Position numbers and translations under genes: made by a program. Below the pieces are notes generated by a model. It was given only the letters and a program-made list of their open reading frames with translations, was not told where the DNA came from and did not search any database. This document shows positions 16,135-47,694 of a DNA stretch of 64,000 nucleotides, in pieces (the stretch's first letter is position 1; every line of letters starts with the position of its first letter). This DNA is from Trichosphaerium sp. ATCC 40318 (lineage: Eukaryota > Protista > Tubulinea). Location: contig JALMLS010000064.1 in the NCBI GenBank assembly GCA_038496445.1, forward strand, positions 496,001-560,000. Reading direction: 5' to 3'.

Positions 16135-18635
16135 ATGGATAAAATAAAGATAAAAGGACTTTGCCTGTCATGTATTGGTACGTTTGACGTCTATTATGAA
16201 AACTACGCTTGGATTATGCTTTCTGACGCTCCTAGTTGGTGTAAAGGAGAAAGAGAGACTCAAACGACAAAACTTATTTGTTGACATTACAATGCTCCAC
16301 GATTTCAGAAAAGCTGGCCTACAAGTTGAAGACAGCATTGATAGAACTATAAACTATAGGTTAGTGAATTTACGTTTTCGTTTTCTTAACAACACGTGTT
16401 CTTATGATAATTTTGTTAGTCATGTAGCTGACTCTGTATCTAAGCTTGTTGAAGGTTAGATAAGTTTTTTCTTCTTTTTTTTTGAAGAAAAGACATTTTG
16501 ATTGATGGTGACCTCCAGACTTATGATTTTGTAGATATAAAGGCGAAAACACTTGAGTACCTTGTAGATAAGATAGCAATGCATGTTTTGGAAACAACAG
16601 TTGCACGTTCTGTCACGGTTGAAATTGCAAAGCCAGCTGCTATTTGTACGATTACAATTGTGTCCTTTTTTTTTTTTCTCTTTCTTCTTTTTTTCCTGCT
16701 TGTAGCTGACTATCTCAAAGGGAGAGCTAATGCATCGGCTGTTGAGATTACGCGTGTTCGCGAACCAACTAGCGTTTCAATCCAGCAAGATAGTACCTAT
16801 CCAGTAGCAGCAGAACCGGATTTTTCTTTGGACAGCTTACTTCCAAGACCTCCAAAAGAGGGCAGAGTTTGGCTTTCTCTTGGATCTAATATGGGATGTA
16901 GAAGTCATAATATAAACAAAGCAATAGATAGTATAGCGTCATTTGCTAAAGTGAGATCTGCATCATTTCTATATACGACCAAGCCAATGTATAAAACAGA
17001 CCAAGATTATTTTTTAAACGCAGCAATCGAAATCAACTGTATGTTTTCACCAGAGGAGTTATTGCAAAAACTACAAAAGATTGAAACTGATATGATGCGC
17101 GTGAGAGGTACGCTAAGGATTTAATTGGAGTACTAATTCTACAAAGAGGAGAGGTATGGGCCACGCATCATTGATATTGATATTCTATTCTTTGATGACA
17201 TTTGTCATAATACATCGATTTTGACGATTCCTCATCCGAACATTGCTGAAAGACCTTTTGTCATTGGTCCAATGAACGAGTGAGTACGATGCTTGATTTT
17301 AAATAACTGATCTTTGTAGTATTGCACCTCAAAAGAAGTGTCCGCGTTCTGGAAAAACAGTGGCAGAAATGTGGTCTTCGTTGAAAAATAGTCAATCAGA
17401 TATTTCAAGAGTTGTACCAATTACGTTTGGGTCTGATAAAAAAGAAGTATGCATGCGCATGGATGAAAGAGATCCAGCTGTTTTGATGGGTATTTTAAAT
17501 GTTACACCAGATAGCTTTTCCGACGGAGGAATGTGGGAAGAGGTACATACAAAGTTTTTTTTTTGCACGCATCTAATGTTCCTGGAGGCGTCTGAGGCTA
17601 TAAAGAAAGCGACTGAGCTTCATAATTCTGGAGCAGCAATAATAGATATAGGTGGCGAAAGTACAAGACCTAGCGCAGATAGTGTAGAGTACGTCTAGAC
17701 TTATTTGAATAAGAATATTTCAGGAAAAGGTATAAATTATCAAACTAATTGGTTTTAAAGCGCTGATACAGAGATTGAAAGAGTTGTACCAGTTATAAAT
17801 GGCATACGAGCTAAACTGCCTGATACAATAATATCTATAGACACTACTAAAAGTAGTGTAGCGAGAGCGTCTATAAAAGTATGATAAGCGTATAAAGAGT
17901 TTCGCTAAATGATTAATGTTTTTTTAGGCAGGAGCAAACATTATTAATGATATTTCGGGCGGTTTATTCGATGAAACTATTCTCGATGTAGCCAAAGAAA
18001 CACGTGCACCTATCGTAATAATGCACACAAGAGGTACACCGAAGGAAATGAAGAGTCTTGCAGTATATCCAAAGGAAAAAGGACTTGTCCATGAACAGGT
18101 ACTTGTTTTCTTTCTTTTGTTACCTCTTAAGGTGTTAATTACCTGCAAGATTGCCACGGAGCTAAGAGAACGTGTCAAGAAAGCACTTGAGGTTGGTGTG
18201 TACCCTTGGCAAATAATTGTTGATCCAGGTTTGTCCTACATTTTTTTAATAACTAAGTATTGAGCCAGGTATTGGTTTTGCAAAGGATTCAAAGGCTAAC
18301 TTGGCTATACTAAAAAACCTTGATAATTTTATTTCTCGAATGTGTCATTTTCCCACTTTGGTACGCAACAACGGCAAAGTTGTACAATATCTCTTACTTA
18401 ATTGCAAGATTGGTGCCTCACGAAAGCGTTTCATTGGATCAATTACAGACAAGAAAGTACCAAAGGAACGAGTTTGGGGAACAGGTATAAACCTTGCAGT
18501 GTAGTTTATTATTGACATTCGCTAGCTGCTACCGTCACTGCCAGTGTAGCGGGTGGGGCAAAGATAATCCGAGTCCATGATGTAATTGAGTTAATAGATG
18601 TGCTCAAAGTAAGTAATGCCATTTACAAGGCATAA
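16135..18635 (+). CDS. FOL1: Trifunctional folate synthesis enzyme DHNA-HPPK-DHPS
   Basis: DHNA (GVKEKERLKRQNLFVDI, TINY, TLEYL, VEIAKP); HPPK (LSLGSNMG, FLNAA, GPRIIDIDIL, LTIPHP..ERPFV); DHPS (MGILNVTPDSFSDGG, IDIGGESTRP, ISIDT, INDISGG, MHTRG, DPGIGF, GASRKRF, RVHDV). Confidence 0.95.
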
Positions 18636-18887: not shown

Positions 18888-21800
18888 ATGAGTAACAAGG
18901 AGGTAGTGGAGACTTCACCAAAGAAGGAGGGGTCTCCTTCGGCCGACAATGCATCAAATAGTGTTAGTGTGGAGTCAACGGACGCAAGTGCACAACAAAA
19001 CGCCACAAGCGTTGCAGGAGAGCCTATAGCTGTAATAAATAACGAAGCCGAAATTAAGGAACAAACCACAACAGAAAACGCAAGTGCGAGCGACGAAAGC
19101 CTTATCGAAGAAGTATTACCAGGGACGGAAGATAGGAAAATTAATAAACAGCAAAAAGACGAGTCAAATAACACAGTACCCGCTAGCGCATCGCAAAACT
19201 CAGCTAGTACTCCTGAGGATGCTACTGGCTCAAAACAAAGCTTGCAAAATTCGCACAAAAAAACGACAGACAAACGCACGTCTGAACAATACAACTAGAT
19301 TTTAACGTGCGCCGCATTGAAATTTAACGCTGAATTAGGAACCTCAGAAGAGAATAAGATTGTACGCTTTTAAATGGGTACACAAATATAACGTTTATGC
19401 TTATTACTGCGTAGAGCTCACCTAGGAAAGAGTCTGGTCCTAATCACAAATCAGGGTGGCTGGTAAAAAAAGGAAAAGTACGGCGGAATTGGTTAAAACG
19501 GTTCTTTGTACTTGATGATACAACACTGAGCTATTTCAAATCATCTGTGCGTCATTAACACACCTCTCTTTAAAATCCTTTTGGAAATCTGACACTTGAA
19601 GAAAGAAATGCAAAGATCGTAAAGGTGGTTTAAGACTGAAAAACATAACAAAGATTGAGGCAACAGCAATTCGAAAGAAACAATATTGTATCATTCTAAA
19701 CACACCTGATCGTGTATTCAGTATGCAAGCAAAGGATAATCAAGATAGGAGTGAATGGGTTACCGCCATACGCAAGTCAGTAACCAAGCTTGGTGGTATG
19801 AGATTTTGTTATTGATTTTGTTGAAACCGACTTTGTTATTGTTAATGCACTTCTTTTCGCAGTTGAGACTGGTCCAGTAAAACAGCTGTTTGACTGTTGT
19901 GGGAGAGGTGATCTAGATGAAGTTATATCCATATTATTAAAGGGATCAGTCGATGTTAATGTTAGAAACCCACGCGGAGATACAGCGCTTATAATTGCTT
20001 GTGATGCTGGCCACGAAGATATTGTTTCTAAGTTAATTTCGCTTGATGCAGATGTAAATGCCCAGGTAATCCAGTGTTGACACCACACATTTACCTAACA
20101 ACGAAATAGAGTAAGGACGGAGCAACAGGGTTATTATTTGCTTGTCAGAACGGTGATATCAAGGTTCTGTATTGTTAATACAAATTAGCTTGCTTTATTT
20201 CTAATTTGCAATATAGCTTGTTGAGCTACTCCTTGATGCTAAAGCTAGTATTGATGTCAAAACTACCGGTGGTTCAACTCCTCTTTCTCTTGCCAGTGAA
20301 TGTGGTCACTTGAATGTACTCAATAGTTCCTTTTGATTGATATAAATGCTAACAAAAAATTAGGTTGTAGAGAAACTTTTAGAAAAAGACGCAGATCCAA
20401 ATGAAGCTCGTACAACTGGTGCTACTCCTGTGTTTATGGCTGCATTGAAGGTTCTACTGTTAACATAACAATGCTTGCCTCTAACAGTTACTAGGGTCAT
20501 GCTAGCGCTGTAAAACGTTTGATAGACGCATCAGCGGATATTAATCTTTCTCGGAGCGATGGAGCTTCACCACTACATGCAGCAGTTCAAAATGGTTATG
20601 ACGATATTGTAGACTTGCTTATAGAAGCTGGGGCAGATGTAAACGCAAAGTTAGAGTCAGGTAAGTTAACAAACAACCTAGGTATTACTTGTACGCTAAC
20701 TTCTACTGTAAGAGGTGACGTCAGGTCTGACACCATTATATATTGCTAGCAGAGAAGGCAGAGCTAAAATGGTAGAGAAACTACTAGAAGCTGGTGCTGA
20801 TATCAATGCACAAACAGGGGAAGGTAATTGATTTACTTAGGTATCTGACATCTTTGCCTTACGTTGTTTAAATAGGAGCGACACCTTTCTTTATAGCATG
20901 CCAAGAAGGTCATGTTAATGTTATAGAAGTATTGATGGAGGATAAGAATGTTGATGTAAACACAGCTCTAAAAGAACGTGGTGAAGTACCACTTCATGCA
21001 GCAGCTGTTTTTGGAAGGGTGGATGTTGTAAAGAAATTAATTGATTTTGGTGTGGACGTAGATATTAGACGTACAGATGGTGGTGTACCTCTTCATGCAG
21101 CTTGCTTTGGTGGACAAACAGAAGTAGTTGATCTTCTACTAACACATGGGGCTAACCTCGATATACAAACAAAGGAAGGTCACTCTCCTTTGCACTTTGC
21201 TTGCCAACAAGGCCGTTTAAGCGTTTTACAAAAGTTAATAGCTGCTGGTGTTGATCTCAATAAGCAAACAAAAGAAGGCTCAACAGCTTTGTATGTTGCT
21301 GCTTCTAAAGGCATTGGACACTTGAAAATAATACAAGAACTACTGGCTGCTGATGCTACTGTATCAATATCAAATGAAGATGGTTTGACGCCATTAGATA
21401 TAGCTGCTTTAGGTGGACAACGAAAGGTTGTATCAGCTATTAAGGAGAAAGCCGGATCTGGTTGGTTTAATTCTACTAAACCACTCGTCATACCGGCAAA
21501 GCATTCATTAGTACTTGAATTGCATTCCGTGGGAGTTAAGGTATGTTTTTTTTGCACGTGTTGTGATGTTTATTAACTTTGGTTTTTTTTGGAAGGCTGT
21601 TGCTATGTTGAATGGAGAGCATGTTAAGACATTTGCTGGAAAAGTAGGATACAATAATCCAGGCGCTCATCCTAAGATTATGAGCCAATTCTTCAACAAG
21701 GATGACGAAGAACAAGAATTGACGTTACGTATTGAAGAAGGAGAAGGTTTAGGCGATGGTAAGTGCTTTAAATGCTTTTCTGCGATTGGATTGATAGACA

Positions 21801-24768: not shown

Positions 24769-27700
24769 ATGGCGGATAGACCTCCGAACATAAATAGAGG
24801 TGCCAAACCAAATGAAAGGCCAAACGGACCGCCAAAGGTGTGTTGTAGTGCTTGTAATCACTTCTAAAAAAGGTCCTGTCAATGAATTAACACATAAATG
24901 TCTGTAGCGCCCTCCTACAGTAAATAGAAGAGCTAAACCAAAAGTATCCGGGCCAATTAAACGTAGAACGCCGCGTAGGCCAAAACAACGTACTACGCCT
25001 TCAAAAGTAGGTGACCCACCTGTACACATAATTTTAACGCGTGACTGTTCGTAACTGTAGTAGGCAAATGGAACGCCACCAAACGTTCCAAAACGCAATG
25101 CGCAGAGCCCTAAACGATCACCACCTCCTACAAGTGTTGACACTGAGAATGATTTCTACCAGGCACGACCCGATACACCTCTCCAGTTTTTACAACCACC
25201 ATTGACAACTCTCAGCCTCCAACCGAAGTAAAAAAACGTGCTCCTCCTCCTGTAGGCGCCCCAAAAACCCCGAAAAAGAAACCAAACAGACCAGCACCAA
25301 GACCGGGTATACCACCAAATCCAAACAGAGCGCACAAGCCGAAATCCTATGGAAGAGGACCAAAAAAGCGCAAGTTACTGCCTAAAAGACCTAAAAGCAA
25401 ACCAAAAGGATTTAACAATCCCCATAATGGCAAAATCCGAGTTAGTACATTTTTTTATTCAATGAAATTTGACTTTACTGTTAGAAGGTTGGAACAGGTA
25501 AAAAAGTTGGTCCAAAGAAGCGTAGATTTTCAGGAAAGGGAGGTAAAGCGCCACTCAAGAAGCAGAGTATATACAAAAGAGCTATGGCCAAGAGTGCACC
25601 TCCTAAAAAGAAATCAATAGTAAAGTCAGCAAAGCGACCACTTACCGCTACTGCACCTACCAATGGCACTATAAAATCTGTAACAGCTCCTAAGGGACTT
25701 GGTAATATCATTGCGAAAGGCCTACCAATGGCGAAAGATGAGAAGGTGCCAGAAACAACTGATGAACCAGTACCAAAATCTGAAGTCCCTAAAACGTCAT
25801 CTCTTACAGCTCTTTTGGATTCCAAGCTTGATCTAAGAAGCCCACCCCCGCGACCAAGCGAACCTGTCCAAGAAACACAAGATCCACCACAATCAGATGT
25901 GTCTGTACAACGAAGAATAGCACCAAAACCACCAACGGGGGCGGTATCACAAAAAAATGCACTAACAGCTTTTTTGGATAAGTCAGAAAAGAGCGCTGAT
26001 CAATCAGGCGACAAGAACTTATCTGATTCTCACAAACAACCTGAACCAATCGTCCCACAATCACCTGAGGTACAAGATAAAGCACCCGAGCCACCAGATC
26101 TACCTACAGAACTAGAAGAAAAAGAAGCTGAAATTGATGCTGACTTTGTGAAACCAGAAGCCATAACGCCAAGCTCGAGTCAACCCTCTAGTGCCACTCC
26201 AGCAAGTAATAATCCGAAGCCATCACCGGTAAAGACGCCGAAGAGACCTCCGATGAGAAACAGACCCAAAATGCCTTCACAGGCTAGTTCAACAAAGTTT
26301 TCGTCGCCCAAAGGGCTAGCAGCAATCATAGCTCAAGCAAAAACCCCAACACAGTCTCAAGACCCCCCACCTACACCGAAAACAGTCAATCGAGCTCCAT
26401 CACCAAAGAAGGCTCCAGGAAGACCACCACAAAGACCTTCAGCTAAAAACCGAACACGGCTTTCAGTCATTAAAAAAAAACGTTATGGAAAGTTTGTACC
26501 ACCAGATGAGCCACTGCCTGTGCCGCCAAGTAAACCACAACCTAAGGTATCCGCTGACCCAAAACCTGAGATATCCCCAAAACCTGAGATATCCACTGAA
26601 CCCCAATCCGATCCTGAAGAAGAACCACTACCAGCAGTACCGTCTTATAAACCACCACCTCCTGTAGCACGTGTTGCTAAGCCAGTAGTTCCTGCTGTAG
26701 TACTCGATGGAGATGATGTTAAAACAGACGAAGAACATGATGATAGTCGCCGTGGACGCTCTCCTACACGCAAAAGAAGTATGGCTGTAAATATGAGAAA
26801 CTCTCAAAGCAGATCATCCTCTCCAAATGAGCTAAGAAAATCTATTGGTCCTCCTATTAATAGATCATCACAACCACATGTGTTGGCTGAGGCTGGATCT
26901 CCACCGGCAAGTACTACATTAGTACCGCCTGTAAATCGTTCGTTGCAACCGAAAACACTTGATAGTCCTTCAAGGAGTGCACCAGCATCCCCTAGAGGAA
27001 CATCACAGCCGAATTTACAGGTGAAATCGTAAGTTTCTTTTTCGTTTTTTTTGTTTTGGTATTCACTTTTTTTTAGACCTCCTACAGGTAAAGCCCAGCA
27101 TCAATGGGCTGTAAAGACTTTCGGTGCTGCTACTTTTTGTTATTGTTGTGGAAAGTTCATCAAAGGATTATACAAACAAGGGTTTCAGTGTAAAGGTACT
27201 TAGTCGCAATCTTAGCATGTAAAACGAACGCACAGAAAATGACATTTTATTAGTATGCAGAGCACCTATACGTAAGAAGTGCTATGCTGCAGGAACTAGT
27301 TCTGATTGTTGTGGAGAACCGAGAATATGGAATGGTAAAACAAGTCAACCCGTAGGAGCTGAATACTGGAAACGACATGGTACGTGGCTCACTTAAAAAC
27401 AAAACACAAAAAAAAACATAAACAACTAATTTTTTCTGAAGCCGAAAAGCCACCTCCGCCAACAACGGTTCAAGTCGCACAAAAACCTAAACCCAGGCCA
27501 GAGGTTAAAGCGGGAAGGGGAGCGATGAATAGACCTAGAGTGAGTTCATTTAGTAACACCGAAACAGGAGAAGTTGAGACAGTTGTAAGTGCTTTATTTT
27601 ACGAAAACCTGAAAAAAAAGGAACAGAACAAACAAAAGTTTTGTGTTACTAATTTTTTTTTTCACAAGGTTATGCTTCCTGGTCAAGGTGGAACTGTAAG

Positions 27701-42749: not shown

Positions 42750-43763
42750 AATGTAACTAACAAATAAAACAAACCCTTGACACTACGCAGTGATTAATTT
42801 TTGAACTTAAATTTCACATTTGAAATAAAAATCTTGTTCACTGTTTTTTTTGGGTTTGTCTCCTTGTATGTTACCTTCATTGTATGTTTATCGTCTCAAC
42901 AATAATCTACACCAACTATGTTATTTTGTTATTCGTTGAAATGTTCAATTGAAACGCACGTGACACCAGAATGTTATTCTTGATTTTATCCTTTTTTTTT
43001 TTGAACATCAATTTTTTGCAAAAACAAACCTCGAGCCTGGATGGGTTAACAGACTCGAGATATGATTTAGCAGTGATGGAAAATATAGATTGTTATCTCG
43101 TTTGTCTCCATAAAAGTCTAAAATGTTCTTTAATGACAGCCAAACTAATCATAAGGTTCGAAAACTGAACCACTTGCCAAAAAAAGAGGAAAAAAAATAA
43201 GAACAAGAAATCGACGGAAATGCACTCTTTGTTATTAGGAGAGGTGGACAAGTGTTGGGTTTGTTGACGTCTGAATTAATCGATCAATTACGGTGCAGTG
43301 AATAGGAATAAGCCAAGATACACTAGTAACGTGATAAGCAACAATCAAGTTGTTCCTTTTTTTCTTGATTTTTTTTTTCCGTTTTTCGTTCACTTAACGT
43401 ACTTTGCGTTGGTCGGTGACAAATGTGATGTTGTGTGAACGGACGGCGAAGTGAGGTGTTTGACATTTCGTATATTTACATTGTGTGTTTGTTTTGCCAA
43501 GAATCAGGGACCACAACCTTCCGCAGGGTGGTTGATATGTACATGTGTTTTTTGTTGGGTAGTTTTTAATCGTTTTTGTGGGCAGGGTTTGAGTTCAGAC
43601 ATTCTGTAACTCTTATATTTTATCTCCCTGCAACCACTAGTAAAACGGGTTGTAACAACACCAATAGAGATAGGCAAGACGTCGTTTAGTTAGACGCGAG
43701 ATGCAAAAAATGACAAAAAAAGCCGGAAAAAAAAATCTAACTGTCAATCAATATGTGATTGCA

Positions 43764-46700
43764 TTATCGCTTGCGTTCCATCATCACATGCCGATACAAG
43801 CGTTCCAAGTCCATTGTATTGGCAATCTTATAGTAAGGAATTTTCATCTACACAGACATCAACAACACGAAGAGGCAAAGAGAGGAACCGAAGCGAAGTT
43901 TTGAAAAAAAAAAAAGGGCGAAAAAAAAATATGCAAAAAAAAAAAGGAGAGTAAGTAAGAAACATCTCCAAGGATCAGCTCTGGCCATTACATTACAATA
44001 CTTATTTCTTTTTTTTACAGTATCACCCAAAAAAACCCTGCCAAGGTCGACATATCGAGCTCAAAGAGTTGTTGTAGTACCTTTTTAGCAACTTCCTCTT
44101 CTTCAGGACCATTACCAATAGCAATCCATTTTTTAATTCTCTCATGCCCTTTCATAACTCTTTCAAAACATTGTTGCTTATTACACCCTAAAAAAACCAC
44201 CTCATAAGCAACAAAACCTTTTCAGAACCATAAAAAAAAAAAGAAAAAAAAGAAAAGAAGAAAGATCATCAAACCTTTTGGAGAAGCACTCAACACATTA
44301 TCTAGAGGTACAACCTCAGTAAAATCAAAAAGTACAAGCTTAGTTAAAGCAGGTATCAAGTGACTTGCGGTAACTACTGAATGAAGTACGCTGCATAGAA
44401 AGATTAGTGACAACAAAAAAACTAGCTAAAATAAAATAAGCTGTACGTACCGTTTCTCTCTTAACTTGGTAAGTATCTCACGTATTTTCTTTGACCAGCC
44501 ACCCGTAGTTTTAGAAATATCATCTAAGGTGTCTTTTATAACTTCCATCTTTCGTATCTTTGCAAGTTCATCTGTCTAAACCGAAGAAAAAACATTAGTA
44601 AGATCGACATTGCAAAAAACTAAACACAATAAACTATCTGTGTGATCACAACGTACGTCTTTCCAAAGTGCACGTATTTGACGCATTCTATATGCTGCAT
44701 CAAGAGCAGTAGGTGGTTTATCTTCAGTGAACTTTGCTCTGAAATCATAACTAAAAGAAAGTCAGCCAAAAAACAACAACAACAAATAATCTATCAACGT
44801 ACTTTACAACACTAGCTCCATCATCTGCAGCCAAGTACTCCTTTGCAGAAGAAAGGCCACCATCCCCTTTAAACGTATCCAAGTTCTTGTAAAACAATTT
44901 AGTGTTAGCAACACTTGTTATCAAGTTAATGATAATATCATCTTGTATACGTGGTTCTTTATCATGTTGAATACAAAAGTCTTGATACTTAGTAGCAATT
45001 ATCATTGTTTCATCCAAATCCCAAAGAACACCAATACTCCCTTTAGAACTAAAAGAAGGAAGACATTGATTTGTTCGACAAAGTTCACGCTTTGGTTCTG
45101 GAGGAGGTGGTTGTGTTGGCTGTTTTGGTTTATCTGTTTTAGCTTCCTGATTCTTGACACCATTTGCTTTCTTATCGCTTGCTGGGTCCTCATCAGATTT
45201 CTTTTCAGGCAGTAAGCTTGGATCACGTTCAGGAGTCTTGATATCTCTTTCATTTCTTTCTTTACTTCTATCACGTCGTTGTCCATCATTCTTGGCATCT
45301 CTTCTACCTGAGCGCCCATCTCGTGAACGCTTAGAATCTTTACGACGGTCTCGAGAACGTCGAGAGTGTTTGCTGCGCCTTCGACGCTTTGGGGACCTAC
45401 AACAGTTGTCAATAAATGGAACAAATAAGTTAATGCAATTAGTACCTGCTAGGAGAACGTGTGCGAGAACTAGAACGGTGTCGCTTTGTGCCTCGTTTAG
45501 GAGACTTAGAGTAAGACCCAGAATAAGACCTAGACGAGGAAGATCTTGACCGGTGCTTGTGACGCTTACGAGAGCGTGATCTTGGTGTTCGGTAGCGTTC
45601 TCTACTGCGAGAGCGCCTATGCTTCCTGCCTCGGGAGCTAGATCGCTTGCGACGCCTTGATTTATCACCTCGCCTTGGCGATTGTCGCCGTGGAGGCGTC
45701 CTACCGCGTCTTGGAGAATCTCGTCGTCTTCCAGGTGAATTACGCCTAGGTGGCGTGCGTGGGGATCGAGACGATTTCCGGGATTGCCTTCGTTTCTGTG
45801 GTGAACCTCGTGAGTTTTTCACGTGTCGCCGTGGAGACCTACAAACGAATATTAGAAGGATTTAAGGAATATTAGTTGATAAACGTACGATGATCTTCGT
45901 GAGTCACGCTTGTGCCCATTTCGTTGTCTATTGGTGTCATTCGTACTAATAGAACATTAGTCTCAGGCTTAAAAAGCTGGCAAGATGACTTACGTTCTCC
46001 TTCGCTTGTTTGGACCTTCTCGGTCACTATTTACATCTCTGCGACGTTTACCATCTGAATGCGATTCTAAAGAATTTCCATTGCGCCTGCCAGTGACAGT
46101 AAGGAAAACACGTTTTTTTTTTGGATTTGTCTCGTACAGTTTTTTTGTCTCCGGTGGCGGTGGAGGTTTAGGTTTATGTAGTTGGCCGTTGGCCTTGGGT
46201 TTAGGTGGTTCTGGAGGGCACGGTTCGGATACACTTTCAGCCTTGAAATGACGGTTAGGGAAAAAATCGCCGACGGGTTTTTTCAAAGACGAAACGACGT
46301 ACTTGTTTGTTTCCGTTGTAACGCACTATTTGTTTCACTTCTTCATCAGTTATTGCAGCCCAAGCTTCAGAAAATTCAACGTTTGTTTGAACTTTTCTCT
46401 CCAATTTATTCCATGTACAAACCTCACCTATTGGGCGTAAGGTTTTTTCCAAACGGATGTTTTTTTCCTTTGTGATGGTTAGTTATTGAGTTAACAAAAA
46501 AAAATAGCGCTGGGTAATACTATGAGGTTTTAGACGTAATTTTACGTACTATTCTACGATGTTGTTGTATTTCGTGCAAAGCTTTCTTGAACTCTGGGTT
46601 AGTCTTCCAATTTTTATCGGAAGGCTCTATTGCCCATGCCGGTATGCTTGCAGCGCGTCTTGGTAAAAGAGTGAATAAACCAAATTAGCAAAAAACAACT

Positions 46701-47204
46701 GCTAACCTTCGCTCTGCGTCTATCTCGGCGTCTACTGCCTTTAATTTGTCCATGCCAGCTTTGATGACTTCTGGTTTTAAAATCGCTCGTTGCTCCCAAA
46801 TGTTTAACACTTTGGTAGCTACTTTAAACTGCGACTCCTTGTACATGTTGTTTGGAATCAACAAATCAAGGACCGCCAAGATCGATGCCTCATCTATGAG
46901 AGGCGCTAAAATGTTCTTTCCGCTGTGCTTGAGGGAAATTTGGCATATAGAGTCGATGAGGTAAAAGAAACAAGTTCGTTCTGCTTTTGCTTTGATTTCT
47001 TCTCTCTAGTGACATTTAGATGTTATTAAAATGGTGTAGAACAACCTGTCCCATCGCCTCTATAATTTGCCCATACAAATCACCAACGAGAGCTTTGTTT
47101 TTTAGCACAAATTGCGTTGCACCATTGATAGCTTCCTTAGAGTGGTCCAGCTTCTCCAGCAGGTTGTTAAAAGAGTCGTACACTGCGCTATCATCATCAG
47201 ACAT
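43764..47204 (-). CDS. EYA: Eyes-absent (EYA) HAD phosphatase with N-terminal CID/Ctk3-like domain and RS-rich region
   Basis: All exons splice in one frame. CID-like LEKLDHSKEAINGATQF..FYLIDSICQ..KVLNIWEQR; RS/SP repeats; EYA motifs LWDLDETMII, AYRMRQI, TGGW, VVTASHLIPALTKLVLF, K..CFERV, IAIGNGPEEEEVAKK, PYYKIANTMDL. Confidence 0.85.
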
Positions 47205-47694
47205 GCTAGGAGCTTTTTATAAGTCGGATAAATAAATATAGTGGACAAACTTACCGAAATATCGATTAATGATGCGTGTGAAATATCCTTGATGCGTGGT
47301 AGCTTCGTAGCATTCCAATTTAGAAACTATAGAAAATAATGGACTTGTACTAGGCCGAATTTCGGCGACATTATAATTATTACATTGGCCACGTATTTGA
47401 TGCCCTTGTGAAGTGAGCGTTTTGTACGTTTTGCTCTGTATTGTTAGTTTGTTTCACTTTTGAGTTATCGTTAGACTTTATATATCACAATACGCCTCAC
47501 GCATTCAACAAGACCACTAAATAGCAGTATTAGACGTGCTAGTTGACGAGTGATCATAACAACTTAAAAAAAAGTACAACATAAGCTTCAACGCGCTGCC
47601 TTTAATGCTGCGGAAAGGTTTTAAGTAAGTCAGGATTATCCAACAGAGGGTCAAGTACACCAAGGTACAGTCACGCTAATAGAGCATTAGGGTG

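Follow-up and report, generated by a model that had tools for sequence, protein, structure and literature searches.

Introduction

Proteins of the eyes absent (EYA) family carry a C-terminal HAD-type phosphatase domain of about 255 residues. A 2021 review describes the N-terminus that precedes this domain as disordered in animals and fungi and absent in plants, and states that no EYA was found in protozoa (PMC8069645). Here we analyze a minus-strand gene of Trichosphaerium sp. ATCC 40318, located at positions 43764-47204 of a 64-kb stretch of DNA that was analyzed as a whole and is hereafter called the window (GenBank assembly GCA_038496445.1, contig JALMLS010000064.1, positions 496,001 to 560,000). 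Its predicted product joins an N-terminal CTD-interacting domain (CID), named after the C-terminal domain (CTD, or tail) of RNA polymerase II (Pol II), to an Arg/Ser-rich (RS) region and a C-terminal EYA-type domain. A literature search found no paper joining "eyes absent" with "CTD-interacting domain" and no description of a CID-RS-EYA architecture, in agreement with the original prediction, made from the sequence of the window, which knew of no described protein with this combination.

The enzyme that removes phosphate from Tyr1 of the Pol II heptad repeats is poorly settled, and the role of EYA outside animals is likewise open. PP1/Glc7 has reportedly been proposed as the Tyr1 phosphatase in yeast. 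The sole possible Tyr1 phosphatase named in a 2021 review of transcription phosphatases is Rtr1 (PMC8091971). In leukaemia cells, an EYA inhibitor raised the level of CTD pTyr1, as published in 2025, and that report cites earlier work on EYA1 acting on Tyr1 (PMC12548103).

Several described systems share parts of the architecture found here. SCAF4 and SCAF8 begin with a CID, after which comes disordered sequence rich in Arg and Ser, and among solved CIDs theirs are nearest in both sequence and fold; they carry an RRM and no enzyme, whereas in the present protein no RRM was found and an EYA domain stands at the end. In animal EYAs (EYA1-4) the disordered N-terminus is a transactivation region that works with SIX proteins, and plant EYA consists of the domain alone (PMC8069645), whereas here a CID and an RS region lie N-terminal to it. 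The CIDs of RPRD1A and RPRD1B, on Ser2P/Ser7P repeats, are scaffolds that bring the phosphatase RPAP2 to a neighbouring repeat of the Pol II tail (PMC8091971); there, CID and phosphatase reside in two different proteins and Ser5-P is the target, whereas here both are part of one chain and the phosphatase is of the EYA (tyrosine) type. Finally, FCP1, SCP and plant CPL, which are DxDxT phosphatases of the HAD superfamily, work on the Pol II tail and are fused to a targeting module (PMC3215212), but they belong to another HAD subfamily (the Ser-specific FCP homology domain) and are targeted by BRCT or double-stranded RNA-binding modules instead of a CID.

Gene structure and expression

Translation of the region in three frames and conceptual splicing yield one reading frame on the minus strand, from the ATG at 47204 to the TAA at 43766-43764, with 832 codons in 14 exons separated by 13 GT-AG introns of 40-233 nucleotides (nt) (Table 1). 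Donor sites are mostly GTACGT or GTAAGT, and each intron contains a CTAAC/CTAAT-like branch site. The peptides quoted in the original prediction (LEKLDHSKEAI, FYLIDSI, KVLNIWEQR, EIQQHRRIEKNIRLEK, EFSEAW and WDLDET) are all present in the spliced 832-residue product.

Four public runs (X1-X4, of which X2 is a metatranscriptome) cover this stretch, and their contigs were mapped to 43700-47300. In contigs of X1, X3 and X4, 12 of the 13 coding introns appear as listed joints with lengths exactly as predicted (skips of 233, 60, 81, 52, 49, 50, 48, 51, 61, 82, 48 and 40 nt), while the 87-nt intron 12 is shown as adjoining contig pieces (44186/44274), the joint itself being dropped at a repeat. All contig joints read CT..AC on the plus strand, corresponding to GT..AG when read on the minus strand. 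The splicing seen in the contigs shows that the runs contain RNA (two of them come without a library record). The junctions between 46550 and 45400, for which an RNA check had been suggested, show the predicted splice joints in contigs of X1, X3 and X4.

One X3 contig of 1520 nt (contig 7) extends from 43741 to 45822 via six exons and joins the entire EYA part to RS exon 8. Other X3 contigs hold four joints in 45836-46302, three joints in 46466-47046 (a 575-nt contig) and, in a fourth contig, the joint of an intron in the 5' untranslated region (5'UTR). Adjacent X3 contigs share an overlap of 16-26 nt, as reckoned from piece and side lengths, and X3 depth is non-zero on every exon. The non-coding exon upstream of the 5'UTR intron extends to at least 47300.

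The coding sequence contains no Met codon between residue 138 (within the CID) and residue 591, which directly follows the DLDET motif (residues 586-590). Translation of an EYA protein with its nucleophile Asp586 must therefore begin no later than the CID exons, and the catalytic motif can be translated only together with the CID. The RS region is interrupted by intron 8, and in exon 9 it continues without a break to the EYA domain. Between the reference and the contigs of X1 and X2 (related strains or runs), seven out of ten differences are synonymous third-position changes, which fits coding constraint on the frame, linker included. With a single frame, introns spliced in the RNA contigs of three runs and no internal Met in this interval, the claim of one expressed polypeptide-coding gene is upheld, and we have little doubt that the CID-RS-EYA architecture is real.

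An N-terminal extension of the 832-residue protein was considered and rejected, because the spliced 5'UTR contains a TAA in the same frame, five codons ahead of the ATG. An upstream open reading frame (ORF) of 15 codons begins at 47313, a position that may belong to the leader. Intron 13 (43848-44080) is T-rich and, at 233 nt, 3-5 times the length of the other twelve coding introns (40-87 nt); a search of Rfam with the gene and its surroundings, intron 13 included, gave no match at E<=0.1.

The C-terminal EYA-type domain

Similarity to EYA proteins is found in exons 9, 12 and 13. The NCBIfam model TIGR01658, here scored in single-exon pieces, matches exon 9 at profile positions 6-64 (E 0.11, 12.2 bits), exon 12 at 177-210 (E 9e-6, 25.6 bits) and exon 13 at 215-247 (E 7.5e-4, 19.4 bits), and these pieces are collinear. 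The sole credible matches of the same exons in the Protein Data Bank (PDB) are EYA2 and EYA3, at corresponding positions, with exon 12 aligning to EYA2 180-212 and exon 13 to EYA2 215-248. A Pfam scan of the EYA exons gave no match, the EYA family not being among the Pfam matches.

Within these alignments the catalytic blocks (DxDxT, the motif II Thr, CFER and G-x-G-x-E-E) follow each other in EYA order. Motif I (WDLDET) aligns with WDLDET of EYA3 and places the nucleophile at Asp586 and the acid/base at Asp588 (DLDET at 45020-45006). For motif II, Thr738 (44371-44369) is aligned in VVTASHLIPAL versus VLVTTTQLIPAL, and the motif III Lys, which precedes CFER (NKQQCFERV), aligns with EYA2. In motif IV, IGNGPEEEE stands against IGDGVEEEQ of EYA2, so that the Asp is replaced by Asn795 (AAT, 44113-44111) while the following Glu residues are kept, a point absent from the original prediction. 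This first acidic residue of motif IV helps to hold Mg2+ in HAD enzymes (PMC8069645).

The 152 residues between Asp586 and Thr738 would fit a large helical cap inserted between motifs I and II in a domain of about 255 residues, although the cap sequence itself is unmatched and not recognisably similar to that of EYA proteins. When the N-terminal piece of the EYA part was folded alone, the model (predicted local distance difference test score, pLDDT, 35.6) was too poor for a structure search, and the atlas features of this piece gave sub-threshold HAD-like fragments only. Judged by these alignments, the C-terminal domain is of EYA type but divergent, and its motif IV is unusual, in line with the EYA-type assignment made earlier.

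The N-terminal CID

Pfam was scanned exon by exon, and the CID family (PF04818; cut-off 23.9 bits) matches exon 2 alone at 32.6 bits (profile positions 47-118) and exon 1 at 13 bits (profile positions 1-29). PDB sequence alignment gives the CIDs of SCAF8, SCAF4 and RPRD1A as the closest chains of solved structure; a search with exon 1 found no credible match in the PDB. The CTD-contacting residues Tyr64 and Asp67 of SCAF8 are identical here (Tyr68, 46963-46961, and Asp71, 46954-46952). The position of SCAF8 Arg112, which forms a salt bridge with phospho-Ser2 and is Met in Pcf11 (PMC3215212), is taken by Lys118 (46813-46811), so that a basic residue still occupies the phospho-Ser2 contact.

Structure prediction for part of the domain gives similar matches. 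Exon 2, which encodes the C-terminal two thirds of the CID, was modelled alone with AlphaFold (pLDDT 75.9), and the top 18 Foldseek rows for this model are CIDs of SCAF8, SCAF4 and RPRD1A (TM 0.56-0.71, E 0.06-0.6, 22-25% identity), with a root-mean-square deviation of about 2.5 Å for the SCAF chains. Language-model features assigned exon 2 to a CID cluster of the atlas at 0.95. A CID-type domain at the N-terminus, as had been proposed, is supported by the sequence matches, and the model of exon 2 is consistent with part of the eight-helix right-handed superhelix of a CID.

The RS region and linker

The middle of the protein is strongly basic (pI 12 for residues 245-570). In its core, residues 329-500, Arg makes up 35% and Ser 24% of the sequence, and there are 32 RS/SR dipeptides and 6 SP[RK] sites, in accordance with the RS region that had been claimed. 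The Pfam scan gave no RRM match in any of the exons scanned, and the protein would thus be at most SR-related and not a classical SR protein.

In the Lys/Pro/Glu-rich linker that follows (residues 501-577), strain differences are mostly synonymous. Run X1 has two contigs on part of this linker (45150-45267), one identical to the genome and the other with 6 differences in 118 nt, which might come from another allele, another strain or a paralogue. Pieces from the X2 metatranscriptome are 95-99% alike to the same linker exon.

A candidate phosphatase for the Pol II tail

From this architecture, the CID would dock on Ser-phosphorylated heptad repeats of the Pol II tail. The disordered stretch of about 330 residues that follows, basic and RS/Pro-rich, would act as a flexible tether and probably place the protein in the nucleus, among splicing and elongation factors. 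The EYA-type HAD domain would then dephosphorylate a nearby substrate, most likely the heptad phosphotyrosine (Tyr1-P) on the polymerase tail. We tentatively favour this reading, an EYA phosphatase tethered to the phosphorylated tail and acting most likely on Tyr1-P, and put its chances at somewhat below even. The proposal of a Tyr1-P phosphatase had been made in the original prediction; it stands as a reasonable inference from the architecture. The scaffolding of RPAP2 by RPRD1A/B and the effect of the EYA inhibitor on pTyr1 are precedents for this reading.

A number of observations weigh against this reading. CIDs bind the unphosphorylated side chain of Tyr1, and Tyr1-P blocks CIDs, so that docking and catalysis would have to take place on different repeats. 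The summed TIGR01658 score of the three exon pieces, about 57 bits, is far under the whole-domain cut-off of 195 bits, and exons 10-11 (the cap) and 14 (the last) gave no EYA match when searched piecewise with TIGR01658 and against PDB sequences. Asn795 in motif IV may leave the activity weak or lost. The domain had been described as a complete EYA HAD domain; motifs I-III are present and the length fits a whole domain, but the motif IV substitution and the exons 10-11 and 14 left unmatched in the piecewise searches qualify this description. No contig of the runs spans both the CID and the EYA parts.

Searches with single-exon queries, which bear on the conservation of the fusion, found no relative. 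In these searches the length windows exclude full-length proteins, and blanks are weak evidence. The 97-residue N-terminal piece of the EYA part, run exhaustively with HMMER against 1.84 billion representatives, returned only an unrelated repeat protein (P0001) and no self-match, so that this collection evidently lacks the proteins of the organism itself. Neither word-indexed searches with exon 2 and the exon 12 ORF nor two scans of metagenomes, one using the EYA N-terminal piece and the other exon 2, found a relative.

A broader possibility, which we regard as rather unlikely, is that EYA-type HAD phosphatases erase Tyr1 phosphorylation at the Pol II tail, and that the fusion, read as a "Rosetta stone", hard-wires this link via a CID and an RS tether. 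If true, this would assign a function to the EYAs of plants and protists and would strengthen the case, still thinly supported, that animal EYAs control CTD pTyr1. A natural protein with both a CID and an EYA domain makes the link between EYA and the CTD a simple, testable hypothesis, which the report on the EYA inhibitor makes topical.

Alternative explanations

The EYA phosphatase could instead be active on something other than the Pol II tail, the CID and RS region only bringing the enzyme to transcribing chromatin or splicing factors; the target might then be a histone tyrosine (compare animal EYA on H2AX pTyr142), SR proteins or components of the spliceosome. The long RS region speaks for this, as do the known animal EYA substrates, which are chromatin and signalling proteins (PMC8069645), and a further report ties H2AX-pY142 to transcribing Pol II (PMC6614800). 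The CID would put the enzyme nearest to the heptad tail, but nothing at this locus separates this explanation from an action on Tyr1-P, and we consider it rather unlikely.

Also unlikely, in our view, is a pseudo-phosphatase or phospho-reader, that is, a SCAF-like adaptor between CTD and splicing whose EYA module lost efficient catalysis through Asn795 and now binds, for example, phosphotyrosine or another partner. The changed motif IV and the highly divergent cap region are in its favour, and RNA contigs from two organisms with different labels share the Asn795 codon, none of the RNA contigs differing there. An incomplete motif IV is also found in some fungal and choanoflagellate EYAs (PMC8069645). 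Yet Asp586 and Asp588 are retained, as are the Thr of motif II and the Lys of motif III, Asn795 is followed by four Glu that include the acidic +4 position, and the Asn carbonyl could still ligate Mg2+.

A different identity for the N-terminal 244 residues would be Ctk3, the gamma subunit of the CTD kinase complex CTDK-I, here carrying a phosphatase. Ctk3 has a non-canonical CID, a CID-like N-terminal helical domain, followed by a C-terminal helical bundle that binds cyclin, and itself has no RS region or phosphatase. The Pfam CTK3 family (PF12243; cut-off 23.7 bits) scores 22.3 bits on exon 1, better there than CID, and 18.5 bits on exon 2; each piece stays below the cut-off, whereas CID on exon 2 exceeds its own, and the two pieces summed would pass. 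The VIA Z scores of SCAF8 (8.6) and of the non-canonical CID of Ctk3 (5ce7; 8.3) amount to a tie, at values that are middling for a helical protein, and the atlas neighbours of exon 2 include CTK3 clusters. Identity to SCAF8 is 22-24%, compared with 18% to Ctk3, and the SCAF8 residues that contact the CTD are kept. Sequence identity and these groove residues alone favour a canonical CID over the Ctk3 type. The likeness of EIQQHRRIEKNIRLEK and EFSEAW to the C-terminal motif of Ctk3, as put forward in the original prediction, found no backing: scanned piecewise, exons 3 and 4 have no match at E<=1 to CTK3_C (PF12350) or another credible Pfam family, and exon 4 has no match among PDB sequences. 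We consider a Ctk3-type subunit very improbable.

Least credible, to the point of being hardly conceivable, is that two adjacent genes, one for CID-RS and one for EYA, or a read-through artefact were misread as one, for although the whole stretch is not spanned by a single contig and contigs cannot show transcript ends, intron 8 splits an RS region that enters the EYA domain inside exon 9, one contig covers 43741-45822, all 14 introns (the 5'UTR one included) lie on the same strand with continuous X3 depth, and a separate EYA protein that includes motif I has no usable start codon.

Table 1. Positions of the gene and its parts in the window, with the evidence for each.
Feature	Position	Strand	Evidence or remark
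Whole coding region	43764..47204	-	14 exons, 832 codons + TAA; introns backed by spliced RNA contigs
5'UTR intron, 49 nt, GT-AG	47206..47254	-	joint 47205/47255 in X3 contig; ends one base before ATG
Exons 1-7	47204-47046, 47005-46707, 46658-46550, 46467-46303, 46241-46138, 46086-45994, 45945-45889	-	
Exons 8-14	45838-45446, 45396-44803, 44750-44657, 44575-44451, 44390-44275, 44187-44081, 43847-43764	-	
CID-type domain, residues 1 to ~152, exons 1-2	46707..47204	-	Pfam, PDB alignment and structure matches
Charged region, probably helical, residues 153-244, exons 3-4	46303..46658	-	holds EIQQHRRIEKNIRLEK and EFSEAW
Pro/Arg/Lys-rich region, probably disordered, residues 245-328, exons 5-7	45889..46241	-	composition; introns 5-7 spliced in X3 contig
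RS core, residues 329-500, exon 8 and start of exon 9	45276..45838	-	composition; X3 contig 7 continues into EYA exons
Lys/Pro/Glu-rich linker, residues 501-577, inside exon 9	45045..45275	-	same exon continues into EYA domain
Predicted EYA-type HAD phosphatase domain, residues ~578-832, end of exon 9 to exon 14	43767..45044	-	TIGR01658 pieces, PDB matches

Other features of the window

Among the other ORFs of the window, the only Pfam matches are an HPPK (folate synthesis) domain in one exon (16498-17124, plus strand) and ankyrin repeats in another ORF (20932-21576, plus strand). The longest ORF of the window (25584-27032, plus strand; 482 residues with an ATG start) has no Pfam match; around it GC is raised (0.42) and the AT skew strongly positive.

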